A DNA stretch of 64,000 bases, from the NCBI GenBank assembly GCA_964035545.1, contig OZ037772.1:6370889-6434888 (forward strand). Direction: 5' to 3'. Origin of the DNA: Bugula neritina. Taxonomy: Eukaryota > Animalia > Bryozoa. Of this stretch, positions 25,040 through 63,915 are shown one piece after another. Under the pieces are notes generated by a model. It was not told the DNA's origin. It saw nothing but the letters and a program-made list of their open reading frames with translations, and searched no databases. Position 1 is the first letter of the stretch. Every line of letters starts with the position of its first letter. The position numbers were made by a program, and so were the translations under genes.

Positions 25040-28000
25040 TTAGTTGTTAGCTGGCTGTTCAACAATTTCTAACCCATGAATTTCCAACTCATAGATATTA
25101 AGAAGCTCATTTACTTCAACAGCTGTTACTCTCACATATCTACCATACATTCTAGTACAACATGTAACCAGAAATATATCTGCAGGTGGTTGTCCAGGAA
25201 GGTAGTTACAGATCTCATCTTCTGGTGGATTATCAAAGTTGGTGTCAGTTTCACCAACTGCTACTCTCACATTAGCTAGTCGATCATTGTAATCTATAAA
25301 TTTGAAAACTAGTTTTGAATTAACTTGAATTTAACGTTGAGAATATAAAAATATTATGAGTATATTATTGCAAACATATATGTATATTACCATTAAATAC
25401 AAATAAATCACCACTAATCTGTTCAGACACTATTGAAATAGATAAAATATCAATATTATACAAAATATGCACAAACAATTCACTGACCTTGAAAACTGTG
25501 CTCAGATCTGTCCCATATTTTGACACCTTCAACAAAGTGACTAGTGGTTAAGTCTACTTGCAGCCACGGAGACAATTCTTGATTAGTAGCAAATAAACTT
25601 CCTTGCTCTCCTAAGCCAGCTTCCGAGGGAAGATAAATTCCATCAATAGCCTTCAACCCTGACAAGTTTGCTCCATATATGCTGCTTGATGTAGCAACTT
25701 TATCTAAAAGTTACCAGAATAACATGAATTATACAAGACTTATACAATATAAAGAGTGAATACTCTTTAAAGCTTATATGACATCATGTAAAGTATTGTG
25801 GTATAATGTCACATACATGTGATTAACCTAGTTTACTGACTTTGTAGCATTATTTTTAGTCTTGATATATGTTCAAAAAGCTTATAACTCAAAATAGCAT
25901 TAGCAATTGGCTATCTTTACCTTTAGCAAGATTGGTAGAGAAACCATAGACAGTCAACTCTTCAGAGTGTTTCTTTTTAACAGAACACAGTCTACTAGTC
26001 TGCTCTGTGTTGATGATCACTTCTGGTTTATCAGACAGGAAACAGGTTGATGTATTCTTGTCATATGACACAGCAACACATGACTGGTTACAGGAGCAGA
26101 GAGACAGACAGAACTCATGACTAGAAGTTATTCTCTGTTGGTAATGTGTTAGCACATCAGAAAAGCTCTGGGCTAGAAAAATATTCTCACCTAAAACCAT
26201 TAAAAGCTGCCAATATTGACTAAAACTAAAGCAGCTTCTTTACATTCTACATTGATGCCCACAATTTCTTCACTTTTAAGTAGTTCAAGTCCCAATAGAT
26301 TTCATTTACTGCACAAATTGTGATTTAAAGTTACTATAATTATAAGCATCATCTTTTGAAAGAAAAGGGTTGCGTCAATTTGGGATTTAAGGAACAAGAA
26401 TATTATTACTTGTCACTGAAGATATCTTCATGAAGTAAACCATCTCTTTTAAGTTTTCTGCTTTCAGCTGTACTAAAAGTTCATTGAATAGTCTACAAGT
26501 TCTGTTTGCTGATTCAAAGATACCAGACAGACACTGACTGTGAAGATCAGTGCACTGAGTCATACAGTCTAGACTAGATCGAGCTAAAACATCAATAAAA
26601 TTGTAAGATTGTATTGTGTGTATGCATGTGCATCTGTCTGTGTTGTATCAGTATGCACTGAACATTGATCTGGAAAGGTTAATTGACCTTTGGACTCTTT
26701 CAAAAATAAAACTGACCACAACATCTATTGTTTGCTTGCATAGTACAGCAACAGAGTCAACAAGTCCCTTAGCCCTCAACTCTATAGTCAGTATATGTTG
26801 TAAGAAGTAACAGTTCACATTTTCCAGCATAACCTAATGTTTTTCTCATATTATAAAAAAGAGCATTAGTGTTGCCAGACCTCTGCAATGACATGTAGTG
26901 TAAACTAGCACATGTATTTATATTCCTTTTGAAATATTAACTTCTTCGGTATGTACTGTAATACAATAAACGATGTGTCAGTTTTGGATTAATGCAACTA
27001 TTTTAAATCAAATATTTACAAAATTATCAATTACTTACAATGTTTCAACTGTGAAAAGCTGTTTATCACCAAATCCAGTAAAACTGCTCTCTAGGCATGA
27101 ATTATGAATTATTTCAAAGTTATTTGAAAAGATAAATATCAATGCTTGCCTTATAATCAATAGTGTCAATGTGTCAACGTACTATAACTGCTAATAGCTG
27201 TTGAGCTGTTTTATCCTTTTAAACAAACGTGTGTTATGAAATAAACGCAGAGTTACTAAATATAGCATTGCATATGCTTACATTATATCTGCTGTGAAAT
27301 ATTATAGTAGTTTTTAACCATAAACTTTTTGCAATGGAATATTCAATAATTATTAGGCATTTTGTATGTTATTTTGTGTATAAAAAATTTAAAAAATTGA
27401 ATAAAATCATTATAGATGATATATTTAAATTGATTAGTTTTATTTTTGTCTATATATAAAGTATTAGGTACTTGGTATTTGAGGAAATGTTACTTTTATA
27501 CTATTAATTTTGTTGTATATGTTTGATTGATGGTGAATGAACTATATCTGTAAAACTTTGTTTCAGTCAAATTCTTGCTCATTTCTGAAAATTGTGCTGT
27601 ATGATTTTCATGTTTATCCGCTGCATCTATAATTAACACTCTTTTCAATAAAATAACTATTGTATAACGCAAGATATCATAATAAAAAACTCATACACAT
27701 ACACATACACACACACATATATATATATATATATATATATATATATATATATATATATATATATATATATATGCGTGGTGATATATAAACTAGTTCGGAT
27801 ATAGTATTAAAGATCGAACAAAAAACATAATCAAAATATACAGTATGGTGCAAAAAACAACACAGCAATAAAACAACACTGCAATAAAACAACTATAATA
27901 TTTATAACAATTTTACTGTTTGAATAAAATTCAGTAAGATTTTATTTAACTAATATGTATATAATGTTATCTGATACATTTTGACATTTGTAACTCACTG

Positions 28001-62313: not shown

Positions 62314-63915
62314 TCACTCGCCAACACCATGGTGTTCAACAACTTTTAACCCATGAATTTCAAGCTCATAAATATTAAAAAAGTCATCCACTTCAACAGC
62401 TGTTACTCTCACAAATCTACCATACATTCTAGTATGACATGTAACCAGAAATATATCTGCAGGTGGTTGTCCAGGAAGGTAGTCACAGATCTCATCTTCT
62501 GGTGGATCATCAAAGTTAGTATCAGTTTCACCAACTGTTACTCTCACATTGGCCAGTCTGTCATTCTGAACTATACCATCAAAAACAATAGAGTTATTTT
62601 GTTAACTAATAAGCTCAATGATTGTATTATGTATGTGTAAAATATTCCATTTTGGACCATGTTTCGGAAGGTAGTCAATTAGCATTATAATTAACTATAA
62701 TACACTAGCTACTATAACATATATAAATGCATATATAGCTCATCATTTAAAATATGTTTCACAGTAATATATTAAATTATAGAACTTATTATAGCCAAAA
62801 GCTGTTTATTGACTCACATTGGTTGGTAGCCTCAGATCTGTCCCAGATTTTGACACCCTCAACCAGATAGTTGGTAGCTAAGTCTACTTGTATCCATGGA
62901 GACAGTTCTTTTTGTGTAAATGCTAAGCTTTGATGTTCAATAATGTCAGAAGTGGATGGGAGATAAATTTCATCAATCGCCTTTTGTCCGACATAGCTTT
63001 CAGCTATTACACTACTTAAAGTAACTGTTTTATCTACAATTCATCATTCAAACAGTAATGTTCAAACTATAGTTGTTACGTAACAATTAATCTATTATAT
63101 ATAGATTGCTATCTTGTAACAAATAGATCAAGTAGCTCGTTGAAACATTTATACACCATCTCGTGCTGTACAAGCAAAATATATGCATTGTTAAATTTTA
63201 AGCCTGATAAACTGTGATGAATTTTTGAACTTTTCTTACTTCTAGCAAGATCAGTAAAAAATCCATAAACCACCAAATCTTCAGAGACCGCCTTCTTAAC
63301 AGAACACAGTCTACTAGTCTGCTCTGTGTTGATTATCACTTCTGGTTTCTCAGACAGGAAACAGGTTGATGTATTCTTGTCATATGACACAGCAACACAT
63401 GATTGGTTACAGGAGCAGAGAGACAGGCATGACTCATAACCTTCACCTTTTCTTTGATGGTAAAATGTCATGACATCAGAAAATGTTTGATTGAGGAAGA
63501 AAAGTTCCCCTAAATGGAAAACAAAACAATATTAGCAATAGGAACGGACACAGAGCTAAAGAAATTTTTAATGCACATTTATTTCTGTGGACTCAGTAGA
63601 TTCAAAATTAAATGCCTTCTAAATCGATTCTTAGATTTATTATTTATGATATAAAATCTGGTTTGAAATTTCTAGAGAATTGCTGTAAAACATAAGTTAT
63701 ATTTGCTTCAGGGATTTGAGCACAAAATGTTACATATATACTTGTCGTTGAAGATATCTTCATGAAGTAAACCATCTCCTCCAAGTTTCCTTCCTCCACC
63801 TCTACTAAAGGTTCATTAAACAGTCCACAAGTTCTGTTTGCTGATTCAAAGACACCAGACTGACACTGACCGTGGAAGAAACTACACTCATTCATACATT
63901 CAAGCATAGATCTAG
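62314..63915 (-). CDS. Gene F: PAN-PAN-F-type lectin paralog, 5'-partial (exons 2-5)
   Basis: Exons 63915-63742, 63509-63240, 63033-62818, 62570-62314. GT-AG, phase 1, open frame. Exon 1 is expected beyond position 64000. Confidence 0.88.

Follow-up and report, generated by a model that had tools for sequence, protein, structure and literature searches.

Variability centered on the loops around the binding cleft is established in the F-type lectins of eels, of the Pacific oyster (sperm bindin) and of streptococci (PMC5712786). Among the eel isoforms it lies chiefly in two of these loops, complementarity-determining regions (CDRs) 1 and 2, and in oyster bindin the lectin variants differ around the cleft, with recombination contributing (PMC5712786). 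Here we analyzed a family of genes for such lectins in the bryozoan Bugula neritina, using a 64,000-nucleotide stretch of DNA (G000:C8:6370889-6434888 within a 216-Mb assembly, hereafter the window) in which five complete paralogous genes, named A, B, C, E and F, occupy positions 25040 to 63931; E lies on the plus strand and the others on the minus strand. A previous reading of the window, made from the sequence alone, had described four loops around a predicted sugar-binding pocket as the sites of variation among the copies and had proposed that diversifying selection acts on their ligand specificity. As loop-focused variability in F-type lectins was already known, the core of that claim is not new. 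The locus itself is a new, very large and atypical group of F-type lectins with two PAN domains, and replacement change in its loops, though enriched, does not reach the neutral rate.

An atypical F-type lectin domain behind two PAN domains

A complete gene of the family consists of five coding exons with phase-1 introns, one for the signal peptide, two for PAN/apple domains and two for the lectin domain, and encodes a signal peptide-PAN-PAN-atypical F-type lectin protein that is predicted to be secreted. We built a family profile with the window exon pieces as alignment rows and searched it against PDB sequences. The best solved relative, by profile as well as by fold, was striped bass FBP32 (3CQO, 6e-25, with matches to both its domains), and the profile also matched the Anguilla anguilla agglutinin (AAA, 1K12, 8.8e-9), 4GWI (1e-7) and 2J1R (1.3e-5). 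Lectinolysin and SpX-1 ranked next after 1K12, and discoidin and neuropilin domains reached only 4e-4 or weaker. For fold prediction AlphaFold2 was run on an intron-less homologue, P0031, which is 40-45% identical to the window copies, with the exon pieces of the window included as alignment rows. Its model has a predicted local distance difference test score (pLDDT) of 68 and a predicted template modelling score (pTM) of 0.65, and the ten best Foldseek matches to it were F-type lectins only, with a template modelling (TM) score of 0.71 to 1K12.

The family profile aligns without gaps to 1K12 across the key stretch. With the residue roles described for the eel protein (PMC5712786, where CDR5 is given no residue numbers), loop 1 falls on Glu26/His27 (CDR1), loop 2 extends from Phe45/Tyr46 to His52 (CDR2) and loop 3 covers Arg79-Arg86 (CDR4), just as had been proposed. 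The equation of loop 4 with CDR5 held in part: the loop lies before the last strand and on the barrel's upper side (its top face), as both chain ends exit at the bottom and loop 4 precedes that strand, and the name CDR5 is presumed from this position. Alignment and model together therefore support the predicted placement of the variable loops at the ligand face.

Our paralog sample comprised 40 loci. Both lectin exons were modelled in 31 of them and the domain was intact in 29; the other two, L037 and L046, carry stops within the first lectin exon. The canonical fucose-binding motif consists of a His followed by Arg-X-Asp-X4-(Arg/Lys) (PMC5712786). Across the 29 paralogs the Arg79 equivalent is invariant and the Arg/Lys86 equivalent is present in 28, copy B having Met at this position. 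His52, however, is kept in only 15 and replaced in 14 (it is His in C and E, Ala in A, Ile in B and Phe in F), the Asp of the motif is Glu in 27 and Lys in two, and the spacer has eight residues instead of four. Since the canonical motif is not found, we regard the domain as an atypical F-type lectin domain (FTLD). The cation motif h-h-D-G-x appears as A[IV]DG, with Asp in 29/29 and Gly in 25/29 paralogs, although x is Ile or Asn and not a small polar residue; the Glu147 cation-ligand equivalent is present in all 29, while the Ser49 and Cys146 positions differ. The only canonical FTLD disulfide retained is Cys108-Cys124 (29/29). In these 29 paralogs Cys50-Cys146 is absent, the two positions being Leu/Ile/Met/Phe and Tyr, respectively, and so is Cys82-Cys83, as CDR4 contains no adjacent cysteines.

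The domain shares fold and family with the eel fucolectins (AAA, and eFL-1 to eFL-7 of A. japonica). As in AAA, the His-to-Arg spacing, the equivalents of Arg79 and Arg86, the Cys108-Cys124 pair and the Asp64-Arg131 bridge are kept, and so are the DG and Glu147 residues of a candidate cation site. Nevertheless, His52 and CDR4 are strictly conserved in eels, whereas about half of the bryozoan paralogs have replaced the former and the latter is among their most variable loops. The bryozoan CDR4 is also four residues longer than that of the eel protein, the eel RXD is represented by RSE or RSK, the lectin domain follows two PAN domains and the family has about ten times as many members. FBP32 resembles the family in that one of its domains also lacks contiguous cysteines (PMC5712786), but it consists of two lectin domains in tandem, both with an intact basic triad, and has no PAN domains. 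Some oyster bindin isoforms lack the His-Arg-Arg triad, and microsatellites flank the bindin lectin exons (PMC5712786). Microsatellites also lie beside the lectin exons here, in the form of a (GT)n tract after the stop codon, within 250 nt of it, in 8/31 loci. Bindin differs in that its diversity comes from alleles and splicing within one gene or a few, for which positive selection has been reported, while the diversity of the bryozoan family is germline and spread over 70 or more paralogs, and positive selection was tested for and not found. Single-domain homologues such as P0031 and XP_067947203.1 of Watersipora subatra, another bryozoan and the closest named relative in the protein library, are 27-45% identical across the domain and share the landmarks SPW.Q.DL, W/Y-x-[RQ], L.NV, GR.VRVTA and E.E..G; they are predicted proteins without PAN domains.

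In a six-frame search of the 216-Mb assembly the last exon matched at 113 places, with E < 1e-30 at about 60 of these. Most are on C8, the contig that carries the window, in the interval from 4.7 to 6.8 Mb, and C5, C9, C2 and C3 carry smaller groups. The family is large and lineage-specific, with at least 70 close copies in the genome. A library of representative proteins contained no full-length annotated protein of the family, only exon-sized open reading frame (ORF) fragments and the few single-domain homologues, and in the literature that we searched neither this family nor a bryozoan PAN-FTLD expansion was described; rotifer lectins (PMC8878817) were considered and are unrelated to this case. 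The locus adds to the known F-type lectins a very large clustered signal-PAN-PAN-lectin family in a small invertebrate genome, as well as frequent loss of the canonical fucose histidine and a variable, lengthened CDR4. We infer that the proteins bind glycans and that differences in the loops would alter their specificity. Not only specificity but also the class of ligand probably differs among the paralogs, because half of them have no fucose-binding histidine.

Variability and selection in the loops

All 20 loop strings that the sequence-only reading had quoted for A, B, C, E and F were recovered by six-frame motif search, translation and splice sites, including those that span the intron, and each of its six near-invariant framework segments was present in all five copies. 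The ends it had given are exact as well: 25040 is the last base of the A stop codon and 63033 the first base of the first lectin exon of F. Its central observation stands. When the five copies are compared, 36 of the 40 columns in the loops are variable, but only 24 of the 105 in the framework (Fisher p = 8e-14). Across the 29 paralogs column entropy averages 1.82 bits for loops and 0.41 bits for framework (Mann-Whitney p = 2e-14), so that the concentration of variation in the loops is far above chance. Loop lengths are stable: the W[DN]RS loop (loop 3) has nine residues in 28/29 paralogs and the VTAVE loop (loop 4) six in 29/29. The intron between the lectin exons lies inside the W[DN]RS loop, at the same position and in the same phase in every paralog examined.

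To compare replacement and synonymous change we used our own implementation of the GY94-F3x4 codon model, in which each of the two lectin exons had its own general time-reversible (GTR+G) tree with relative branch lengths kept fixed, and each partition its own rate and dN/dS ratio (omega). In the first lectin exon omega was 0.21 for the framework and 0.48 for the loops. In the last exon it was 0.095 for the edges, 0.40 for a conserved core described below and 0.56 for the loops, where omega = 1 was rejected downward (twice the log-likelihood difference, 7.0). Every loop taken singly remained below 1, three of the five partitions significantly so: 0.73 for loop 1, 0.38 for loop 2, 0.34 and 0.78 for the first-exon and last-exon parts of loop 3, and 0.40 for loop 4. 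Nei-Gojobori counts gave a loop dN/dS of 0.66 in the five window copies and of 0.37 in the 29 paralogs, among which dS is saturated, and a framework value of 0.21. In 11 independent sister pairs the ratio of replacement to synonymous differences per site (pN/pS) was 0.53 in the loops (bootstrap 95% confidence interval 0.34-0.85, which excludes 1) and 0.29 in the framework (0.20-0.43); the loop ratio of replacement to synonymous changes was double that of the framework (Fisher p = 0.0017). When A was compared with L032, L034 and L039, the youngest duplicates, the loops had no excess at all.

The sequence-only reading had inferred diversifying (positive) selection on ligand specificity, which would resemble the selection reported for oyster sperm bindin, and part of the evidence agrees with it. 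The loops are placed at the predicted ligand face, their dN/dS is 2-4 times that of the framework, the omega = 1 class takes in about 40% of first-lectin-exon codons and the posteriors of site model M2a favor loop sites. In the pairs C-E and L036-L067 loop pN is about twice pS. Moreover, M2a applied to the whole last exon was significant (p = 2e-5), with columns 78, 140 and 141. When the core, which has a low dS, was left out, M1a against M2a was no longer significant in the last exon (p = 0.23), so we rejected this signal as an artefact of synonymous-rate heterogeneity. It is a worked example of how synonymous change, when locally suppressed, gives a striking appearance of positive selection. 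For the first lectin exon the same comparison was not significant (p = 0.25), and site-by-site fixed effects likelihood (FEL) yielded no codon of positive selection after correction over the 149 codons, while many loop codons were under significant purifying selection. With synonymous heterogeneity handled, partition likelihood, sister pairs, FEL and site models all gave a loop dN/dS above that of the framework but below 1, and the claim of diversifying selection is not supported by these tests; given also the youngest duplicates, it now appears unlikely.

We think it probable, though by no means certain, that the ligand-face loops have instead been under loosened but real constraint after repeated duplication, with exchange of segments between paralogs. 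Strong purifying selection holds the barrel core, and replacement sites in the loops change about three times faster than those of the framework, still more slowly than synonymous sites. Several observations weigh against this explanation. Before correction, FEL gave a replacement rate above the synonymous rate at column 78, the Tyr of loop 3 DYND (p = 0.03), at column 57 (p = 0.04) and at column 123 (p = 0.06), with columns 123, 106 and 102 in the range p = 0.05-0.09. In the C-E pair loop pN (0.247) exceeds pS (0.120), although not significantly (p = 0.17). The tests have low power for episodic or site-limited positive selection, since synonymous change has reached saturation between distant paralogs and the assumption of a single tree is broken by recombination. 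Finally, the structural mapping comes from sequence alignment and a moderate-confidence model of a homologue, and not from a model of a window protein.

Alternatively, the loops could drift neutrally and many paralogs could have ceased to be functional lectins. The replacement of His52 in 14/29 paralogs, the additional loss of the Arg86 equivalent in B and the existence of broken copies (L037 and L046 with stops, and a truncated copy 'D' in the window) would fit such a decay. We nevertheless consider it very improbable, because 29 of the 31 modelled domains are intact, loop lengths are kept, loop omega is significantly below 1 and the family is transcribed. In a public run labelled RNA-Seq the exons of E and F were covered, depth was zero over the intergenic stretches 59389-60383 and 61180-62174, and intergenic reads occurred only at a high-copy repeat (60384-61179), whereas a DNA run covered the entire region. 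This difference between exons and intergenic DNA indicates transcription, which we assign to the family and not to single copies, as paralogs cross-map. One X1 contig joins first-lectin-exon-like to last-exon-like sequence; this fits a spliced paralog transcript but is no proof of one. Joints in the unlabelled run X2 that seemed to skip the F intron were considered as signs of intron-less copies and not accepted as such, as their sides are only 21-27 letters long at 90% likeness.

Exchange between copies and the conserved core of the last exon

The trees of the two lectin exons conflict, L053 grouping with L064 at 100% in the first and with L052 at 99% in the last, and a four-gamete test of the pairwise homoplasy index (PHI) type gave p = 0.0015. 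Copy C has a mosaic structure. Over the first lectin exon and the 5' part of the last exon E and L062 are its nearest relatives (88-97%), but between loop 4 and the stop codon the nearest is not E but L040, which belongs to the A group and is 96% identical there. Taken together, these results argue that gene conversion or recombination between paralogs re-assorts the loops.

The near-invariance of the framework, which the sequence-only reading had noted, is real, but part of it lies at the nucleotide level and includes synonymous sites, which that reading had missed. A 47-codon (141-nt) core of the last exon, present in A, B, C, E and F and in loci L031-L070, has a mean nucleotide identity of about 94% among paralogs and never less than 88%, while the first-lectin-exon framework averages 76%. 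Its third-position identity is 0.92, and still 0.875 between chromosomes, against 0.52-0.72 elsewhere. Two paralogs that share an amino acid encode it by different codons in 36-50% of cases outside the core and almost never within it, and the estimated synonymous rate of the core is 4.6 times below that of the flanking parts of the same exon. All 43 core copies in the sampled loci are 92.7-97.8% identical to the consensus, and the introns of distant paralogs are as unlike as shuffled sequence. In the DNA run the last exon had an approximately 50-fold excess of depth and the first lectin exon one of only 2-3-fold, an independent sign of the stronger conservation of the last exon. Codon bias was discarded as the cause of the core, since the conserved codons are often minority codons, and so was RNA secondary structure (z = -1.07). 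The second PAN exon contains a weaker island of synonymous conservation, with a third-position identity of about 0.8-0.9.

Concerted evolution could in principle account for the whole pattern, if gene conversion homogenized the framework and the loops merely retained old divergence without any special rate of their own. The core almost without synonymous differences next to saturated introns and a saturated first lectin exon, the conflicting trees, the mosaic copy C and a sister-pair pS that is higher in the loops (0.217) than in the framework (0.120) are all in its favor. In the first lectin exon, however, synonymous difference is similar in framework (0.36) and loops (0.43-0.50) while amino-acid difference is 0.25 and 0.57-0.76, respectively, and the edges and loops of the last exon have synonymous rates of 9.5 and 10.5 but omegas of 0.095 and 0.56. 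Outside the core the framework has thus diverged synonymously as the loops have, and conversion accounts for the 141-nt core only. As an explanation of the loops we therefore find concerted evolution improbable.

Under loosened constraint with segment exchange, such exchange probably keeps the core nearly identical at the DNA level, and conversion limited to the stretch that is similar enough to pair is its simplest explanation. It is also conceivable, but quite unlikely, that the core is a maintained homology block, a recombination anchor that would re-assort the CDR1-CDR2-CDR4 half against CDR5 and the tail among 70 or more genes, or else the shared target of a family-wide control by small RNAs. 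If the core were such an anchor, the family would represent a lectin repertoire whose cassettes are shuffled in the germline.

Gene models and neighboring features

The coordinates of the gene models and of other features of the window are collected in Table 1. The signal-peptide exons are conserved (MKLLL.C.LL.S.F.S..AL) and have phase-1 donors; that of A lies 4.4 kb upstream, beyond a long TA microsatellite, and the exon 1 regions of C and E, which face one another, are 96% identical over 170 nt. PF22633 (F5_F8_type_C_2) matches half of the lectin domain at or slightly under the Pfam cut-off. Copy 'D' has a signal-peptide exon and a single PAN exon; neither a second PAN exon nor lectin exons were found before the start of gene E, and a last-exon search found none between C and E.

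Table 1. Positions in the window of the lectin gene models, of the loops and core of copy A, and of other features.
Feature	Position	Strand	Basis
Gene A, last exon (second half of domain and stop)	25040..25293	-	acceptor AG, phase 1, translation
Gene A, first lectin exon (first half of domain)	25488..25703	-	Pfam PF22633 F5_F8_type_C_2, E = 7e-5
Copy A, loop 1 IYGANLSGL (CDR1 equivalent)	25654..25680	-	motif search and alignment
Copy A, loop 2 (CDR2 and His52 position, Ala in A)	25585..25623	-	alignment
Copy A, loop 3 EHSFQ/D/YND (CDR4 equivalent), split by phase-1 intron 25294-25487	25283..25503	-	splice sites and alignment
Copy A, loop 4 VNELLN, before last strand (presumed CDR5)	25097..25114	-	alignment
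Copy A, nucleotide-conserved core	25118..25255	-	paralog identity
Gene A, PAN/apple exon 2	25924..26190	-	Pfam PAN_1, 23.2 bits (over cut-off 21.4), and splice sites
Gene A, PAN/apple exon 1	26410..26583	-	Pfam PAN_1, 19.7 bits (slightly under cut-off)
Gene A, probable signal-peptide exon	30945..31025	-	tblastn with exon 1 of C and E
Gene B, last lectin exon	39032..39285	-	translation and splice sites
Gene B, first lectin exon (intron about 0.9 kb)	40185..40397	-	translation and splice sites
Gene B, two PAN exons	40581..41256	-	
Gene B, signal-peptide exon	42526..42606	-	tblastn
Gene C, last lectin exon	48018..48271	-	translation
Gene C, first lectin exon (His52 equivalent kept)	48485..48703	-	Pfam PF22633, E = 1.4e-6
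Gene C, two PAN exons	48910..49575	-	
Gene C, signal-peptide exon (MKLLMVCLLFISRFISLVSL..)	50424..50507	-	
Truncated copy 'D': signal-peptide exon 53052-53135, single PAN exon 54518-54706	53052..54706	+	
Gene E, signal-peptide exon	56117..56200	+	
Gene E, two PAN exons	57355..58468	+	
Gene E, first lectin exon	58676..58894	+	translation
Gene E, last lectin exon	59112..59365	+	translation
Gene F, last lectin exon	62314..62570	-	translation
Gene F, first lectin exon	62818..63033	-	translation
Gene F, two PAN exons (exon 1 past window end)	63229..63931	-	
Second-PAN-exon island (also in other loci)	26060-26080, 40749-40769, 49066-49086, 58301-58321, 63379-63399		
ORF of 563 aa between B and C	44115-45803	-	reverse-transcriptase domain RVT_1, E = 7.5e-11
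(GT/CA)n tracts lying 60-90 nt 3' of the stop codons of A, B, C and E	~24766-25040, 38950-39030, 47950-48017, 59400-59450		
Long (TA)n-type microsatellites in cluster introns and spacers	29140-29725, 41089-41618, 43383-43789, 52094-52484		

The DNA of the window is AT-rich (about 31% GC) and contains, besides the microsatellites, a reverse-transcriptase ORF, the C-terminus of which appears GIY-YIG-like by eye, as in Penelope-like elements; it is a candidate for such an element. The repeat between E and F reached a depth of 1e5 or more in both public runs, gave a weak hairpin-type Rfam match to MIR5638 (58 bits, where the gathering score is 500) and resembles a miniature inverted-repeat transposable element (MITE).

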